Origin: Trichosphaerium sp. ATCC 40318
Taxonomy: Eukaryota; Protista; Tubulinea
Direction: 5' to 3'
DNA length: 64,000 nucleotides
NCBI GenBank assembly: GCA_038496445.1
Contig: JALMLS010000538.1
Span: forward strand, 186,001-250,000
How positions within the stretch are numbered: the first letter of the stretch is position 1; the number at the start of each line of letters is the position of its first letter. The notes beneath the pieces are model-generated. The model was not told where the DNA came from and searched no databases. It worked only from the letters and a program-made list of their open reading frames with translations. Position numbers and translations under genes: made by a program. Positions 11,203-46,896 of this stretch are shown here, one piece after another.

Positions 11203-12219
11203 ATGGAAGGAGAACACACAGAAAATACAAGTCGCAGCCTCATTACGCTCCCAGTTGAAGTAATAGTTCATATTCTTAAGCAAGGGACATACACACTCAG
11301 TTCAGCCCAGACTTGCCGCCTACTCCGAGATATTGTTCATAACCACGTGGGATATAATATAATCTATGTTAAAAGCGAAAGGGAAATGAAAGCGCTTTCA
11401 GGAACGCCTTTACTTCGAAACACTGAAATTTATTTTGGGTACGGGTTCACTCCTAGTGACAGTCTCTTGCATTTACTTGCAGGCGTACATACAATTAGCT
11501 TATACGGTTGTAAAGGAATAACAGATGAGGGTATAAAGGCATTATCAGGCGTACATACTATTGATTTACGTGATTGCAAAAGTGTAACAGAAGAGGGTAT
11601 TAAGGCATTAGCAGGTGTACACGAGATTAATTTATCAAGAACACAAAATATGGTAACAGATGAATGTTTGAAGGCACTGTCAGGTGTACATACTATTAAT
11701 TTATGTGGCTGTAAAGTGACATACAAAGGTATCAAGGCGTTAGCTGGTGTATATGACATTAATTTATCACAAACAAACATAACAGACGAAGGTTTGAAAG
11801 TACTGGCAGGTGTACATTCAATCGACTTATTTGGGTGTAAAGAAATAACAGATGATGGCATCAAGGCATTGGCTGGCGTTCAAAGGATCCGATTGGTACG
11901 TACAAACGTTACAGATGAAGGCTTAAAGGCATTGGCTGGCGTGCACACCATCAAGTTAGGATTATGTAAATTGATTACAGATGAAGGCATCAAGGCATTG
12001 GCAGGTGTATATGATATTAATTTAATGGCTACAAATGTGACAGATGACGGATTGAAGGGATTGGCTGGTGTGCATTCAATCAACTTATTTGGGTGTAAAG
12101 AAATAACAGATGGCGGATTGAAGGCATTGGCTGGTGTGCACAATATCACGTTGACGTTTTGTAGAGCAATATCAGATGAGGGCATTAAGGCTTTAGGAAG
12201 TGCAAATATTACCATGTAA
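11203..12219 (+). CDS. Intronless F-box + leucine-rich-repeat protein
   Basis: N-terminal F-box-like LITLPVEVIVHIL...TCRLLRDI followed by ~10 repeats of LAGVHTINLxxCxxITDEGIKA (24-25 aa). Confidence 0.85.
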   Translation: MEGEHTENTSRSLITLPVEVIVHILKQGTYTLSSAQTCRLLRDIVHNHVGYNIIYVKSEREMKALSGTPLLRNTEIYFGYGFTPSDSLLHLLAGVHTISLYGCKGITDEGIKALSGVHTIDLRDCKSVTEEGIKALAGVHEINLSRTQNMVTDECLKALSGVHTINLCGCKVTYKGIKALAGVYDINLSQTNITDEGLKVLAGVHSIDLFGCKEITDDGIKALAGVQRIRLVRTNVTDEGLKALAGVHTIKLGLCKLITDEGIKALAGVYDINLMATNVTDDGLKGLAGVHSINLFGCKEITDGGLKALAGVHNITLTFCRAISDEGIKALGSANITM

Positions 12220-34802: not shown

Positions 34803-37050
34803 ATGGCCAAAAACCTTTCTGGTGAGGTAATTTGTAACTGTTTAGCTACTTTTGATTGACTTTAGACAAGCATTAAACAAAGATTCATATTTTAGGACAA
34901 CTAGGAACCAACTCAAGCGAAAATCAAGCCGATAATTAAAAACGACAATATCAGAGCGTTTGACAAAATGGACACCGAAGACAAGAAAGGTGAGGCTTTT
35001 GTAGCACGTTTAACTCCATCTAACAGTATTTTTTTAAAGCAGCTTATGGATACTCGTTTATGCGTAATATAACACCTGCAAAAGATAGACCATTGGTTTC
35101 TGTTTCAGTATCTAGAAAGCGTACAGTTGGTAATACTAAAGACGTACTAAAAGCGTCAACTACACTTGACACAATGTCAATGTTTGCAAGATTTTCATCA
35201 ACCAATAAAAATGTCGGACCAAATCAAGTATCCGACAGAGATATGGCTTCTGTCACAATGTCACAGTTAACAATTGAGGATCAAGATAGAGTAAAACTTA
35301 ACTATGACGCTAATGACGTATCTTCAAATGATGAAGATCAACGTGTTTACCGTTACTACCAGTGGTGGGTAAGTAATATGAAATCAAGTTAGTAGATTTA
35401 TGTTTTAACATTTCTTTTATTAAGGTTGATGGTATTGAAGAGTTTATGTATATTCATACAATCCAAGATTGGCATCGTGTACAGAAATACCAGCTTAAAG
35501 TTTATTCTTTCGATGCACCAAGATTATGTACATACTGTTTTTTGTGTCAATGTAACGCTCATGTCTGTTTCTCTTCAGCATTGAATTTTGAAGACATTTC
35601 TCCTCCTACACGGTTAGCTGAAGGATCATTTGTTAGTAAAGTATCCGAATCCTCATCTATCGTCAAAGAGAAAGAACGTATAGGTATGTAAAAATCCATA
35701 AACAAAAAACCAGAAGAGCACGTGCTTATTGTTTTCTTTTACAAAAAAGATGTCCGTATCAAAAAAGAACATGCTAGTAGAAATAATGTTGTTATTGTTG
35801 AAGGACTATGTAACTATTTACTTGGAGAGAATGGATTAGTCTATTTGGTCCCACACAATCGTTTTAGATTAACAGGAAGGGTACCTAACCTTAAACGTAT
35901 TATTCAGATTGATGCAGAAGAAAGTCATGCTCTTGCTTTGAGCAAAGATGGCCAAGTTTTCGAATGGAGATCCCACCGTCTCGTTAAGTCTAATACTCCC
36001 GTTAAACTAAGTATTGGCTATTTCATTGTATCCATAGCTACAGGGTTAAACTATTCAATGGCATTAACCAACAAAGGATTTGTTTTTTCTTGGGGTGATA
36101 ATTCATTTGGTCAACTTGGCCACTCTTTGGATAAACCAACAGGAGTACCAACAAAAATTCCCAACCTAGAAAAAGTTACTCAAATAAGTGGTGGAAGAGA
36201 AGATTCTGTTGTATTAATTTCGGATGGGTCACTTACTGTGATGGGCAGAATTCCTGCTATCAGGGTACGCTATATCAAATTTTTCAAATTTGAACGCCAA
36301 GCTCCGTCAGGTTCTTCTCTCAAACGAGATTGGTTCGTATTCTAGTTTCCATTCGCTGTTGAGATAAGCAAATGACTGCGCTTGGCAATGTTTAATTTGA
36401 AGGAAACGGTAACAACCATGAAATCTAAGTACTTTTTTTTTGTAGCATGGAAAAGGACGAACGTATTACAACACTTTTGATGGTGATAAGATAACACTTT
36501 TAAAGCATAACTTTGCTCTAACATCATCTGGAAAAGTATATGAAGTCACAACATCAAAGAAAAAACTTATCAGTGGCAACCTAAAGGTAACAGATATCTG
36601 TGGAAGACAGACTCCTTATTTTTTGGTTAACAACGGAGACATTTATCAAAAACAGCAAAAGAAGGTTAAAAAAATATCATCTTCATCTCAACGTGTACTC
36701 TATCACGCTTGCTCAACAGTGTTTGTTTCCGATTCAAGGACATTGGTTTTGAATGCACAAACAGGGAGAGCAAAATGGATTACAGATCCTGTTAAATACA
36801 ACCAATATCATTGAGACCCTGGTTGTTTTTGTCGTTGTCAACAAGGAGAGGTTAATAGGCGGTTCCACCTGACGGAGAGTTGTGTTAAAGGTTTTCGGTA
36901 ACTGGTATAGTAAGTACTTGTACAATAAATAAACGCCAAAAGCGCCCAATCATATTCTGGTACATGAACTGGCAGAAACAAGGTAAACAATGTTGAACGC
37001 TTGTTTTCAAGTTTCTCGGTTTTTTTTTAGTACACTAACGATGTTCTAAA
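34803..37050 (+). CDS. RCC1/BLIP-II repeat protein, multi-exon; ends approximate
   Basis: IIQIDAEESHALALSKDGQVFEW; IVSIATGLNYSMALTNKGFVFSWGDNSFGQLGH...PTKIPNLEKVTQISGG. Confidence 0.78.
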
Positions 37051-38195
37051 GTACATAAACAAATTTTCAATTGAAAATCGTGTCTTTTAGCAATCTGTCA
37101 ATAGCCGCAAATTGATTTGCAGAGGAATCCCCGGTAAGAGGGCATACCAGCATTGGTCGTGAGAAGCTGACATTTGGTGACTGAGGTATCAATTATTAGC
37201 GAGATTGAATTGATGGTAGATAGAAACGTGACCCATTGAGTAGGTACAACTGCTGAGGAGTGGGATACGAAAAGATTCATTTTCTCGTCCTCGTTGTGGC
37301 CTTTAATAGCTTCAGTCTTCAAGAAAATAAACACCGTGGAGCTCGTTAACAACGTGTTATAACAACTTTACTATTGGTAAACTAAACTTATGGGTGAATT
37401 GGGTTTGAGAAACAATCACAAAACACGTTTGTTTAGAAAATATGACTTTCTATCCTAAGTTAGCAATTTAAACGTGGTGTCAAGCGTTTGGAAAAGTATG
37501 AATTATGTAGCAATAGGGACACCGTAGTAAATAAGTTTTCTTGCTTATACAGTTAGTGGTAATAGCCAACCAACAGATACCTACATACTTTTTTGTCAAC
37601 TAAAATAATTTTGGATTCACATTAGCGCGCTCCCTAGTAACGCGTTAAAAATGATGCTTTATGCTCACTACAAAAAAATACTACACTACTATCGTAAGGA
37701 CAAGCGTGGTTCTTATATGTCCACACAGTATTGTAACGCGCAGTTACAGCGTAAACTTGCTGTAATATTACTACTGCAGGAAGAAATGTCCGAGGGTTGC
37801 GTCATGTGTAAACCCAAATCATGCGTTGTCCCTTTTTCTACAATAAAGTGACTTTGTGAAGCTCCAAATCGATAAACTAGTCGAATTCTCTGTACTAGCG
37901 CAAAAATTCTCTACAAATGAAAAAAATGTGCTTCATTTTTAGTTCTTTTTTTTCATACATACCACGCCAATAACAACACTTGTATCGCTTTAGTTTCAAA
38001 CAAGAGGTAACTTAGCTATAATTTAACCTTAAATTACCTTTTAAAGTACTTTTTGTAACCACGTGAATTCGTGACAAACCAGAGCGTTTTTTTTCTTCAA
38101 AACCGCGCAAATGTCTAAATTAGTTCCGTAAAGAATTCTGTCCTATTTTTTTTTCGATCACGTGACTAATTTCTAAATTTCTGCCCTAGTGAACA

Positions 38196-41100
38196 ATGTC
38201 AGCAGCACTATACTGCGGTGTTATGGTTGCTTTAGTCTTCTTTGTTTCGAGTTCGCTTTCCGCTTCAAGCGCTAGTCCTGATACTATCTTCAATTGTAAC
38301 GTAACTGCTACTAACTGGGGCTGCCCTCCTACTGATTGGAGGAACAAAACAATAACGCGAAACGGCGAAAGGGTGCAAGTACCAAACCGCTTAAGATGTG
38401 ACACGAAACCCGAACCACTCATGAGTTGGGCGACAAAGACAGTCCGAACTGATGACTATATGGTCTTCGTTGGCGCAGAGGATAACCCACAGACCGAATA
38501 TGTACCTGGGAGTATCATTGAAGTTACTGTACTTACCCTCAAGTACTGGTCAAAGTACAGAGGGTTGATGATGTGCGCTTTTCTATCTTTTTTAGACTTT
38601 TTTTCATTTTGCCCTTTTGGTTCCCTCTCCATACGTAACATTACTAATATTGTCTTTAAGGTACGCCGAAGATTCGGACAATAATCACGTGGGTGAATGG
38701 AAGTTACCAGATGATTTCCCACGTGCGTGTGAACTTTGCGAGATTTTCTTTTTTGAATCAGTTTCTGTGTTGCTACTTTTTTTTCATCTTTTTATGATCA
38801 CGTGACGTTGTATATGAACTTACGCGTGTATTTAGCCGTATTCCAGTTGCCTTGGGCTTCTGATCATCAAACTTGCGCTCAGACATTGATGCACGCAAGT
38901 GCTCAATTGAAGCCTTTGAGATCTACCATTTCGTTTGTTGCTCCGCCAAAGGGTACCGGAAAAATCACTTTCCGAGCACTCATAAAGAGCGGCGATGCCA
39001 ACACTGGTGACTTCTGGTGGCCAAATATGGATGGCGACTTTACAATGACAGAATCAAGCGAATCTCTTCCAACAAACACTGGATGGTTCCAAACAGAGGT
39101 ACTGTCCAGCAACCAAATATTATTGTCTTATTCTTTCAAAGGTTGGACAATCTTGTACTGAGCGATGTGAGATGGAAAGTCTTCAATGTGACTTGGTTTC
39201 TTTGGAGAGTATAAACGGCATTGACGAGATTAACTCAGAATTGAAAGTATCTGGATTTTTATGCAAGAAACCCTTCCTCAGTGGTTGCAGCGCTCTTGGT
39301 ACAACACAAAGTACAGCAGGATTTTGTTACTACGATGATACAAGATGCGGAATGCAAGGTCGTTCTAATGATAGAGTAAGCTGTGACGCAAAGAGTACAA
39401 GTGATGAAGACGGGTATGTTTACTTTACGCTGCTTCTTTATTTTTCTAACTTCTTCTCTAAGAATGCGATTCTGTCGATGCTTGGAAGCTACCTTAGCGC
39501 CAGTCACACAGGATAACACCACTGCACCATCTGATAGCGGTACTGGATCACCAATCGACGATCCAAATGGCTCATCTTCATCCTCCCGACCAATCATCTC
39601 CGTTTTGTTGCTTTGCCTATGCACATTCGGTATTGCCTTCTTCACATCACAAAACGGTCGCACTTCAACGCCATTTATCCTTGGACTATTACTTATTGCT
39701 CTCATCGCATTGCCTTCGGCTCACGGACACAACTGGGTCACAAGCATTAGTCGAACACCTCGTGCTAGTACAGAAACACCTTGTCCACCTAAAATTCAAG
39801 AGGGACCTCATGTTCAAGTTGGTCCTGGTCAGGAATTTGAACTAGAAAATGTTCAAGGTCACGGAGGTGTATCTTACTTTGCTATTGTTCACAAGAAGAA
39901 TGAGGATAAATTAAAACTCCACACAAAGAAGATGTTTGAAAAATACTTTGACGAAGCGCCTGCATCAGCACTCTCAACACTTCGTGTTGTACACAGACGT
40001 TTTAGAAACCGCGATCCAGAAGATGGAGACTCCTTCCTGGGACCTGAGATTGCCATAACGGATCCTGACTTTGTTCCTCGACCAGAAGCTTTTGGAGGAT
40101 GGGGAGCTGAAGCAAAGTTGTTTCCATACAAACCAGAGTATCATCAAGACAACTACGCTGAATACGAACATCCAGATATGCCTTGGATTGAAGGTGTTTT
40201 CAGAGGAAGACATTACACCAAGAGACCTGGAGATTCTGATGCTGTTAAGATTAAGATACCTGATAGCTCTGAAAAGGGAAGGTACATCGTTCATTGGTAC
40301 TGGAATGGATATCGTGACTGTACAGATGTTGACTACGTTGATCATCAAGTTGAGAATATTTACGGAATTAAAGAAAACGTGACATCATACACGTACGTTC
40401 TTCAACATATATAAATCAATCGTACTTATAAATGTGCTTAGGCGTGTAGATCACTGCTTCTTCCCAAAGTACAGAAGTGCAGGAAGTACGAACTAAACTT
40501 TTAAATATCAATTGCTAATGCTGTTTTCTTTAGGATGTACAAAAATCTACACTGACTTGTCTTACTGCGCTCGAACATGTGGTCTAACGTGTTCTGGTAT
40601 CGCGGTTATGCCTCTATCAGTTGCATCAAGATACGCAGAAGAAGCATCACTGGTTCCTGATGGTTGCTTTGAAAACTTCGATAACTTCACGGCAATAGAA
40701 AACCCTGAAGATATAAACGTTTGTTTCTCTGTGCGAGGAAGAATACCTTCTGATACCTTTGGAGAAACAGAGATAGTCTTTGAGGATGACCCCGCCTATA
40801 GAGCCACATGTTATGTGAGAGGAACTGGCCGCGTATTTCCGGGATATGTAGCAGATACAGAAAAGGAGATACCATGGAGACATGGAGATAAATGTATCGA
40901 CTGCAACACAAGAGAACTCAACAAAGACTTATCGTTGACGAATATACCAGCCTGGCCGCTCTCTGAAGATTGTATAAACTGCGACCTTGAACCTGTAGTA
41001 GTTAACAAGCCAAAGGTACCTGCGTTAATCAACAAACAGTCAAGTATGGCTTGTAACGGAGCAAGAAACGTTTGGACTCAAGTGAACGGAGAGAACCACT

Positions 41101-41387
41101 ACAGTTGTAACGGAACAAGAGCTGAAGTTTCTAAGCTTTGTCATAAACAGCTTAGGTTCGACGGTAGAAGAGAAAAAACTGATGGTTTCTTCCCTTCAGA
41201 GTGTGCTATGGCTGCTAGCTTGGATCCCGAATGTACTGACAAGATTACAATGTTCGATCGCAGCTTGACTTATGGTGGTGTACGTGCTGGCCAGTGCTAT
41301 TGTCAGACAAAGGTTGAGTGTTGTAACGGGTGCTCATTGGTCGATAGAGGTACTGCCTATCACTATTATGATCTTGCGATGGTTTGA
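38196..41387 (+). CDS. Secreted multidomain putative polyprotein: Reeler-like + Cys-rich domain + membrane/GPI-like anchor + internal signal peptide + His-brace LPMO-like domain + Cys-rich tail
   Basis: Exons join in frame across GT-AG introns: YVPGSIIEVTV...YRGLMM|YAED...VGEW...FVAPPKGTGKITFRALI (Reeler-like); GQSCTERC...SCDA...DG|MRFCRC; two hydrophobic segments; AHG-HNW...GHGG...GRYIVHWYWNGYRDCTDV. Confidence 0.8.
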
Positions 41388-42135
41388 AGTCTTACAAAAA
41401 CCCAAATTGGGAAATAAATATACTTATTATCGTTCTTGCGTTGTGTACCTCACGTAATACAAAACATAATTTAGTCTTCTATCGAATACTATGATCAACT
41501 TATTGTGTATTCAGCTTAACAATGAGTTATTTGTTATACACTTATAGACTTGCCGGTGGACACAGCAGAAGCTCTGAGGGTAAGTCAAAAAATAGTTCAA
41601 ACTGAAATTATACGTGCACATTAATGAGTTCGACTGAAGAATGATCTAAAACCTGTATGCAATAAGAGTACAAAGGTCATAGCATGTAGATAATGTATCA
41701 TGTGTCATCAAGTGAACGTATGTTGGTACTTAAATAACGTTTTTTTGCCAATCACGTGACGAGACTTTTAAACATGATCATAATTAAATTGTGCGTCAAA
41801 CGTAGCGCGCTTTAAAATATCTATAATAATAGCGTCAATGTACATAAAATGCTCGCAAAACAATGTTTTTATTTTGCTATTTTACTAACTTTTTACGAAA
41901 CGAATTCTCGTCTTTGATATTACTCTTCTAGTCCATTTAAACTCTTTTCAACGTACCTAGCGTTTTTTAAATTCATGTTTAAACTTAAAACAAATATATC
42001 ACGTGCAAGCAAGCATTAAAAAAGAGTCCCTTGCGTTTACTCCAAGAATGCACGTAAAATTGCCTTAAAACAGAAATCTCGATTGTCGGTGATTTTTCTC
42101 GTGAAATAGACCCAAAACCGCAACTCAACAGCCTA

Positions 42136-45642: not shown

Positions 45643-46896
45643 CTATAACCACACAATAATTAACCAAACAATAGATGCTATTACTGCAAATACCGTCAAT
45701 ATTTTATATTCACGTGGGATATCCACCCCACTTTTGTCATGTCTTCTAATATACCAACAATAGCTCAAATCTATAGTATGAACACCTGCTAAAGCTGTAA
45801 CACCAGCATCAGTAACAAGAGTACTACATAAATCTATTGTATGAACACCAGCCAACGCTTTAATTCCTTCATCTGTCACATATCTACAGAAACTTAAATT
45901 GATTGTGTGAACACCAGCCAACGCTTTAATTCCTTCATCTGTCACATATCTACAGAAACTCATATTAATGGTATGAGCTCCAGCTAAAGCTCTAATACTT
46001 TCGTCTGTCACTTTACACTCATTAACATTGATGCTATGAACACCAGCCAAGGCTTTAATCCCATCATCAGTCAATTGATCACAAAAAGCAACAGAAATTG
46101 TATGAACTCCGGCCAATGCTTTAATACCTTTATCTGTAGTATTTCTACAACCGCTCAGATTTATAGTGTGAACACCAGCTAAAGCTATAAGGCCATCTTC
46201 TTTTACATTACATTCGCTCAAATCTATTGTATGAACTCCTGCTAAAGCTCTAACACCAGCATCAGTAACATGAGTACCACTTAAATTGATTGTGTGAACA
46301 CCAGCCAACGCTGTAATTCCTTCATCTGTCACATTATTATACCGTAAATTTATTGTATGAACACCAGCCAAAGCTTTAATACCTTCATCTGTCACGTGTT
46401 TGCAAATACTCAAATCAATTGTGTGAATACCAGCTAAACATTTAACTCCCTTATCTGTCACGTTCGTTTTTGCCAATACAATCTTCCGTATTCCAGCTAA
46501 TAGAATTAGATGATCATCAGTACAGTCATCAAGCTGAAGACTATTAATAATCTTAAAGTTACTAAGATCAACTCCTTTCTCCAGATTCTGTAATTTGAGG
46601 TCAAATGCTCCTTGCAAGTACTGTAAGTGGTGTTGTCTTATACCAAATTGAATTATAATTCTATTTGAGTCTATGAGATGAGGTGAAGTTTTGTACAGTT
46701 TTATGAGCTTTTCTTCAGTTTCTATGATTATATCTCTTGTGTTTGCGTATTGCAAGTGGTATTTTGCGATATTAGCAAACATTTTAGATGTATGCACTAT
46801 AGAGTCCATAGATAACAGCGGAACATTGTGTAGTATATGAACAATAACTTCAACTGGTATCTCATCAAAGAATGCGCTGTTTGTGTTCATTATCAA
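45643..46896 (-). CDS. Intronless F-box + LRR protein with C-terminal transmembrane tail anchor; paralog of 11203-12219
   Basis: FDEIPVEVIVHIL; ~11 LAGVHTI.L...VTDEGIKA repeats; ends ILTVFAVIASIVWLIIVWL*. Confidence 0.85.
   Translation of the reverse strand: MIMNTNSAFFDEIPVEVIVHILHNVPLLSMDSIVHTSKMFANIAKYHLQYANTRDIIIETEEKLIKLYKTSPHLIDSNRIIIQFGIRQHHLQYLQGAFDLKLQNLEKGVDLSNFKIINSLQLDDCTDDHLILLAGIRKIVLAKTNVTDKGVKCLAGIHTIDLSICKHVTDEGIKALAGVHTINLRYNNVTDEGITALAGVHTINLSGTHVTDAGVRALAGVHTIDLSECNVKEDGLIALAGVHTINLSGCRNTTDKGIKALAGVHTISVAFCDQLTDDGIKALAGVHSINVNECKVTDESIRALAGAHTINMSFCRYVTDEGIKALAGVHTINLSFCRYVTDEGIKALAGVHTIDLCSTLVTDAGVTALAGVHTIDLSYCWYIRRHDKSGVDIPREYKILTVFAVIASIVWLIIVWL

Follow-up and report, generated by a model that had tools for sequence, protein, structure and literature searches.

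A domain beginning with the residues His-Asn-Trp (HNW) is encoded at 39728-40392 (+) in a 64,000-nt stretch of DNA from Trichosphaerium sp. ATCC 40318 (contig JALMLS010000538.1, positions 186,001 to 250,000). The whole stretch, hereafter the window, is eukaryotic DNA with a GC content of ~37%. The explanation favoured here, at even confidence, is that this HNW domain is the core of an undescribed family of histidine-brace copper proteins of the lytic polysaccharide monooxygenase (LPMO) type, freed from a 935-amino-acid precursor by internal cleavage. Three sequence features by which LPMO-type histidine-brace proteins are recognized are found in the domain. The mature chain is predicted to begin with a His directly after a signal-peptidase site, and a second invariant His (H45, 108 of 108 aligned members) is joined by a putative axial Tyr/Phe at position 195. 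A copper histidine brace of the LPMO type is predicted with good confidence; for a true glycan-cleaving enzyme the chance is put at even or slightly below.

The HNW family and its conserved residues

The motifs named in a preliminary description of this DNA were all confirmed by direct reading of the window. HNW occupies 39728-39736, with the His1 codon at 39728-30. The SR...PC motif supplies R9 and P18-C19 (Cys19 codon 39782-84), and the strand VQVGPGQEFELE corresponds to residues 29-40 of the mature chain. Downstream lie GHGG (39857-39868, His45 codon 39860-62), Tyr73 (codon 39944-46), KIKIP (40247-61) and GYRDC (40307-21), the last of which contains the codons of Tyr195 (40310-12) and Cys198 (40319-21). 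The domain had been ended at 40345, which has to be corrected, as it continues as far as the end of its exon (40392).

The domain was compared by phmmer with 1.84 billion cluster representatives. This search retrieved 368 representatives at E<=1e-3, of which 183 reached E<=1e-10 (best 2.4e-43), and nearly every alignment begins at query residue 1. A word-indexed homology search with a 228-amino-acid piece had returned nothing, as its length filter leaves out long precursors, and its profile and region versions contributed little. The HNW domain is a member of a large, undescribed sequence family, here called the HNW family. The motifs are far beyond chance, given the 368 homologues, and the residues singled out beforehand are invariant or near-invariant columns of the family. 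Most homologues come from protist transcriptomes. Named sources are the amoebozoans Flabellula baltica, Rhizamoeba saxonica and Cavostelium apophysatum, the acantharean Phyllostaurus siculus, and MMETSP transcriptomes; the remainder are for the most part metatranscriptome contigs of cDNA length.

Conservation was assessed in an alignment of 108 HNW-domain sequences (alignment A1) with a mean column identity of 18%. Despite this divergence, H1, R9, H45 and Y73 are invariant (108/108). The residues N2, W3, P18, D141, Y146, P152, D171, G184, Y186, W192, G194, Y195, D197, D200 and G213 are kept in at least 90% of the members, and W192, G194, D197 and D200 each in at least 97%. The window copy retains both the invariant residues and those conserved in at least 90%. 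Tyr occupies position 195 in 104 sequences and Phe does so in 4, and alternation between Tyr and Phe is a known trait of the LPMO axial position. The putative His-His-Tyr copper site proposed earlier is made up of these columns, namely H1, H45 and position 195. The spacing between His1 and His2, which had been called unusually short, is short throughout the family. Here His2 falls between mature positions 41 and 53 (and the Tyr/Phe between 192 and 248), compared with His91 in AA15 and AA13 (PMC5823890, PMC4338556).

Cys19 and Cys198 covary perfectly in A1: both are present in 83 sequences, neither in 25, and one is never found alone. This covariation points to a Cys19-Cys198 disulfide next to Tyr195, which would tie the N-terminal arm to the Tyr195 strand.

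Other columns vary more. At residues 41, 93, 143 and 151, between 66 and 85% of the family carries W, H, R and Y, respectively, and the window copy carries N, R, Y and M. Both H28 and H93 are His in 78 of the 108 members, and this pair might form a second site in the family; the window copy keeps only H28.

Fold model and structural neighbours

An AlphaFold2 model built with alignment A1 reached a predicted local distance difference test (pLDDT) score of 92 and a predicted template modelling (pTM) score of 0.89, and the blocks containing residues 1, 45 and 195 scored 95-98. The model shows a beta-sandwich in which a helical insertion follows the strand bearing His45. A single-sequence AlphaFold model of the domain was of no use (pLDDT 39). 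The best structural neighbours of the A1-based model are LPMO and LPMO-like structures, at modest Z (X325 7.6, AA15 7.5). LPMO families are strongly over-represented in the top 20 of 48,161 chains and are aligned from residue 1. The register of these alignments was checked at the axial Tyr. In the AA15 alignment, the model range ends 11 residues past Tyr195 and the TdAA15A chain range 11 past Tyr184. In the AA13 alignment, the ranges end 9 residues past Tyr195 and 9 past Tyr224 of AoAA13. Tyr184 and Tyr224 are the published axial Tyr residues of these two enzymes (PMC5823890 and PMC4338556, respectively).

Searches of the ESM Atlas gave a similar picture. The feature neighbours of the domain are eukaryotic clusters in which 13-23% of the members carry LPMO_10 (scores 0.93-0.94, 205-210 shared features), and the shape search agreed with the feature search at template modelling (TM) scores of 0.53-0.54. 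Foldseek searches of PDB, AFDB clusters, Swiss-Prot and BFVD returned weak, mixed sandwich matches, none of them viral. The top PDB matches were N-terminal domains of GH123, and the AFDB matches at probability 0.99-1.00 include algal 'Chitin-binding type-4' proteins. The modelling and structure search suggested in the preliminary description gave a confident beta-sandwich with LPMO and LPMO-like best neighbours, and Foldseek TM-scores of just 0.3-0.4.

Sequence searches recognized little. The window protein has no Pfam match at E<=1. LPMO_10 (PF03067, AA10/AA15) matches 0 of the 108 members at E<=0.1, and BIM1-like (PF20238) matches neither the window protein nor any of the 108 members at that threshold. 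AA9 (PF03443) was found below threshold in three members (best E 0.025) and not in the window protein. PDB chains gave noise only, both from the single sequence and from the A1 profile. The earlier proposal of a candidate new LPMO or LPMO-like family fits these results, in which the three AA9 hits are the only Pfam AA/LPMO matches and the best structural neighbours are LPMO or LPMO-like.

Precursor and gene model

Because HNW starts at residue 416 of a 935-amino-acid precursor, His1 is N-terminal only if an internal signal peptide is cleaved. The preliminary description had read the motif at the start of the mature chain correctly and had left its internal position unmentioned; the chain runs from residue 416 onward. 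In order, the precursor contains a Reeler-like module, a Cys-rich module, a transmembrane segment, a short basic loop, a signal-peptide-like segment, the HNW domain and a conserved Cys-rich tail.

In the window, the segment preceding His1 ends AHG|HNW. Among 128 homologous representatives, the matched chain starts with H-N-W in 126 and with HQW or HNY in the rest. A hydrophobic stretch lies upstream of His1 in all 128. Position -1 is A, G or S in 125 of these, and position -3 is A, V, T, C, S or G in all of them. This stretch is an ordinary N-terminal signal peptide in 38 representatives and internal in 90. In 77 of the 90 with an internal His1, two hydrophobic peaks occur within the 60 amino acids upstream, with a short N/S/K/R loop.

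The raw open reading frame (ORF) carrying the domain spans 39383-40414 (+) and reads ...PFILGLLLIALIALPSAHG|HNWVTSISRTPRASTETPCPP...VQGHGGVSYFAIV...KIKIPDSSEKGRYIVHWYWNGYRDCTDV.... Contigs assembled from public RNA-type runs gave three GT..AG introns, at 38573-38660, 40393-40441 and 40486-40533. The second was deduced from the loose ends of two contigs (X4 contigs 15 and 16), which match 40377-40392 and 40443-40451 exactly. The TAA at 40412-14 that closes the raw ORF lies within this 49-nt intron, so reading the ORF alone cuts the protein short and misses the module that follows. The HNW-domain exon is instead spliced to ...RVDHCFFPKYRSAGR-CTKIY... and continues to the TGA at 41385-87. A splice drawn by eye from 40348 to 40534 was rejected, as its phases are incompatible and the RNA contigs instead show the introns 40393-40441 and 40486-40533. 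Upstream, beyond the cover of the RNA reads, three more short introns are predicted that preserve a single frame from the ATG at 38196.

All exons lie on the + strand. Exon 1 (38196-38572) encodes the start codon, the N-terminal signal peptide and the first part of the Reeler-like module; it is defined by the ORF, by the 38573-38660 joint in a contig of run X1 and by the N-termini of collinear homologues. The remainder of the Reeler-like module is assigned to exons 2-3 (38661-39098; ~38661-38728 and 38836-39098) from frame-preserving GT..AG candidates, with uncertain inner intron borders. Exon 4 (39142-39413) would encode the Cys-rich module (QSCTERC...). It lacks read support, is flanked by predicted frame-keeping introns at 39099-39141 (GTACTG..AG) and 39414-39462 (GTATGT..AG), and corresponds to near-invariant Cys columns in an alignment of the upstream regions (A2). 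In translation, exon 5 begins with a Ser/Thr/Pro-rich linker (39463-39592). It continues with a first hydrophobic segment, IISVLLLCLCTFGIAFF (39593-39643), read as a stop-transfer transmembrane segment from the paired hydrophobic peaks of the homologues. The short Arg-containing loop TSQNGRTST (39644-39670), read as cytosolic, has equivalents in the N/S/K/R loops of the homologues. The internal signal-peptide-like segment PFILGLLLIALIALPSAHG (39671-39727) ends in a -3/-1 small-residue cleavage motif, a pattern that runs across the 128 representatives. The HNW domain follows at 39728-40392. Alignment A1, the AlphaFold2 model and its structural neighbours describe it as an LPMO-type beta-sandwich, and X3/X4 RNA contigs cover it over 39765-40393. 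Exon 6 (40442-40485, RVDHC...) starts the conserved Cys-rich module and is defined by a contig joint and by the DHC of the homologues. The 48-nt intron after it rests on a joint from 40485 to 40534 in X4 contig 16. Exon 7 (40534-41387) encodes the Cys-rich C-terminal region, for which ESM features gave a weak PAN/apple-like lead. It is covered by RNA contigs of runs X1, X2 and X4, and an AATAAA lies at 41413 beyond its stop codon. The introns of this gene (38573-40533) are very short, at 43-107 nt and mostly 48-49 nt, with GT..AG ends.

The three parts of the precursor are collinear with transcript-derived proteins of 900-1050 amino acids (P0001, P0003, P0004, P0006 and others), among them a Trinity ORF of Cavostelium apophysatum that is labelled 'complete'. 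Among the fetched homologues, the N-terminal part is common to 80 and the C-terminal part to 45. The N-terminal module aligns by BLASTP (E 7e-21) to P0190, a carrier of the Pfam Reeler domain (PF02014); the window's own upstream exons have no Pfam hit, Reeler included. The upstream regions of the homologues (n=76) contain Reeler in 26 cases, DOMON in 2 and a plastocyanin-type Copper-bind domain in 2. In relatives such as P0044 (alignment A2), DOMON or Copper-bind replaces Reeler or stands beside it, upstream of the internal signal peptide, and four relatives match the C-terminal part of Glyco_transf_18. The arrangement of Reeler, hairpin and HNY recurs on a genomic contig of a JGI sample. On this eukaryotic contig (L001; 1713-4584, 6001-7802), a fused gamma-beta-alpha urease lies beside the gene with Reeler, transmembrane hairpin and HNY domain, followed by TSP1-repeat genes.

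Directly after the HNW domain, most homologues have a Cys-rich module with the pattern (R/K)xDHC...C...C..GVNVVP (alignment A3; window 40442-40485 and 40534-40700). DHC is found within 60 amino acids downstream of the domain in 96 of 117 homologues, and this Asp-His-Cys is near-invariant. The module may belong integrally to the functional unit, or it may be a binding module of a new kind. The precursor ends ...HYYDLAMV, with no C-terminal hydrophobic glycosylphosphatidylinositol (GPI) signal.

Other features of the window were noted. The palindrome TCACGTGA (E-box core) occurs nine times against 0.73 expected, at 38158-38165, 38798-38805, 41752-41759 and six further places, and one copy lies 31 nt 5' of the ATG of the precursor gene. 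This suggests that TCACGTGA is a common promoter element of Trichosphaerium sp. Large ORFs in the window encode LRR_6 (RNI-type) repeats at 11203-12219 (+) and 45643-46896 (-), and the ORF at 35722-36345 encodes RCC1 repeats.

Competing explanations and known systems

The following route to the mature protein is proposed from topology rules, the -3/-1 statistics and the processing of viral glycoprotein precursors. The N-terminal signal peptide would direct the Reeler-like module and the Cys-rich module to the lumen of the endoplasmic reticulum, and the first hydrophobic segment (39593-39643) would halt transfer, leaving the short basic Arg-containing loop in the cytosol. The segment at 39671-39727 would then restart translocation, and signal peptidase would cut after Ala-His-Gly. 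With this cut His416 would become residue 1 of a new chain. Copper would be bound in a T-shaped brace by the free amino group of this residue and by the side chains of His1 and His45, with Tyr195 beneath, and the Cys19-Cys198 disulfide would link the N-terminal arm with the Tyr-bearing strand. The Reeler part would stay anchored in the membrane. The released chain, comprising the HNW domain and the DHC/Cys-rich tail, would be soluble and extracellular, free of any membrane anchor, and would most likely be a copper-dependent enzyme that oxidizes an extracellular glycan.

Several observations weigh against this proposal. The top structural neighbour is the non-catalytic X325, the Foldseek scores are low, and no Pfam, PDB-sequence or profile match connects the domain to any LPMO family. 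There is no Gln or Glu two residues before Tyr195, a residue present in AA9 and some AA10. No known carbohydrate-binding module was found in 117 downstream regions, where only Laminin_G-type lectin domains were seen, in three. The exon 4-exon 5 junction, which joins the Reeler part to the HNW domain, is without read support in the Trichosphaerium genome. The window copy is off consensus at four well-conserved positions (W41N, H93R, R143Y, Y151M). The convergence of His1, His45 and Tyr195 on one surface site is inferred, with indirect support from the pLDDT of 95-98 at these residues, the Cys19-Cys198 covariation and the offsets of the structural alignments.

Some observations would favour a copper binder or relay, namely X325 as the top match, the lack of known carbohydrate-binding modules downstream and the near-invariant acidic residues beside the Tyr. 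The domain would then have the same fold and brace and would not cleave polysaccharides, serving cell-surface copper uptake or homeostasis as in X325/Bim1-like proteins, or acting as a redox relay with the anchored upstream module. Of the two acidic residues, D197 and D200, one could add a ligand, as Asp does in X325 (PMC13353379), and the Reeler, DOMON and cupredoxin modules upstream in homologues belong to a repertoire tied to electron transfer and metal handling. This alternative is possible but less probable than the favoured explanation. The Pfam BIM1-like domain is unmatched, the C-terminus has no GPI signal, X325 is barely ahead of AA15, and the axial Tyr/Phe and the Y-x-x-C arrangement are retained as in catalytic families. 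The retention of these last features speaks for an enzyme.

The absence of copper altogether is unlikely. In this case the domain would be an extracellular Ig-like beta-sandwich for adhesion or binding, with His conserved for folding, another metal or a ligand. The GH123 domains at the top of the Foldseek PDB matches and the lack of a sequence match to any copper family would agree with such a role. However, the invariant His lies exactly at the signal-peptidase site in 128 of 128 representatives, N-terminal and internal alike. The free N-terminal His appears to matter, because this placement is otherwise hard to explain. H45 is invariant as well, position 195 alternates between Tyr and Phe, and LPMO families crowd the top 20 structural neighbours. 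It is very improbable that cleavage does not occur at all and that His416 never becomes a free N-terminus, either in a multi-domain membrane protein with a permanent transmembrane hairpin or through separate translation from the ATG at 39464. That ATG lies one base past the predicted 3' splice site, the exon 4-exon 5 junction lacks read cover, and cleavage is a prediction. Yet the -3/-1 rule holds in 128 of 128 representatives, 38 relatives start HNW right after an ordinary N-terminal signal peptide, and transcript-derived homologues are single ORFs that span the junction. A start at 39464 would presumably leave His1 in the cytosol.

The favoured explanation, an LPMO-type brace freed by internal cleavage, would have several consequences. 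The requirement for an N-terminal His is the reason why known LPMO domains follow a signal peptide directly. In a large protist family that retains the brace residues, a domain lying hundreds of residues into the precursor, behind a transmembrane hairpin with a canonical cleavage site, would reveal another route to a histidine brace, and the precursor would be a rare cellular polyprotein processed by signal peptidase. The family is unseen by Pfam and probably by CAZy-style annotation too, so the oxidative copper proteins of amoebae, rhizarians and marine plankton transcriptomes would be under-counted. If catalytic, the domain would provide a new scaffold (very short His1-His2 spacing, large insertion after His2, conserved Asn2-Trp3) and maybe a new substrate. 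If non-catalytic, it would extend copper-handling proteins of the X325 type beyond fungi. The recurrent Reeler, DOMON and cupredoxin modules upstream lead to the testable hypothesis of a built-in redox partner. A more speculative and less probable extension is a new auxiliary-activity family in which signal peptidase splits a self-contained two-part oxidative system. One part would be an anchored Reeler, DOMON or cupredoxin module that donates electrons or serves for docking, and the other a copper oxygenase that is secreted and owes its catalytic N-terminal His to the internal cut alone. As far as could be found, this would be the first LPMO-type enzyme encoded away from the start of its gene.

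How does the HNW domain compare with the systems already described? To our knowledge, the fold of AA18 is not a histidine-brace sandwich. The LPMO families listed are AA9-11 and AA13-18 (PMC13431639). AA18 is CelOCE, described as a lytic cellulose monooxygenase that works by an exo-type mechanism without precedent (PMC13353379). In the searchable literature, no paper was found that connects LPMOs to Reeler domains, to an internal signal peptide or to the protists concerned. The start of AA10 and AA15 reads H-G-Y/F...P-x-S-R, and the HNW domain resembles it with H-x-aromatic...P-S-R. The second His on a T/A-G/x-H strand and a putative axial Tyr/Phe that precedes a Cys by three residues, with x-D-V/I after it, are further likenesses, and part of the ESM and AFDB neighbours of the domain carry LPMO_10. 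As in AA15 (TdAA15A, PDB 5msz, PMC5823890), the protein is eukaryotic and predicted to be secreted, with an N-terminal His right after the signal-peptidase site. AA15 has been found in algae and oomycetes and is recognized by Pfam search (PMC5823890); in contrast, the HNW family does not match PF03067, as given above. It also differs from AA15 in having His2 at 41-53 rather than 91. Compared with AA10 and AA15 together, His1 and His2 are separated by a short region, with ~25 residues without regular structure, and His2 is followed by a large helix-containing insertion of ~75-100 residues. Asn stands in place of Gly as residue 2, and the domain is often internal to a precursor.

X325 (LaX325, PDB 6ibh; Bim1-like PF20238) shares with the HNW domain a histidine-brace sandwich and an association with the cell surface, both predicted here. 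The HNW domain differs in its 10% identity, the absence of a Pfam match and of a GPI-type tail, and the retained axial Tyr. In AA9, a disulfide runs from the Cys of Y-x-x-C to the N-terminal region, and in AA11 His2 comes early, as His60. The HNW domain resembles AA9, AA11, AA13 and AA16 in its Y-x-x-C after the axial Tyr, with a predicted disulfide to the N-terminal region as in AA9, and in its relatively early His2, as in AA11. It differs from them in having no Gln at Tyr-2, in its protist lineages and in the sub-threshold AA9 match of only 3 of 108 members.

The precursor has its closest parallels in polyproteins processed by signal peptidase, such as the glycoprotein precursors of flaviviruses, hepaciviruses and bunyaviruses. 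These contain a transmembrane segment, a short cytosolic loop and an internal signal sequence, and a cut on the lumenal side frees the next ectodomain. Unlike them, the HNW precursor is the product of a cellular gene, and its cut would serve chemistry by turning the His of a copper site into a free N-terminus. Against the known systems, the domain is best described as a predicted LPMO-type brace in an unrecognized sequence family, set apart by the shift of His2, by its loop plan and by an unusual precursor.

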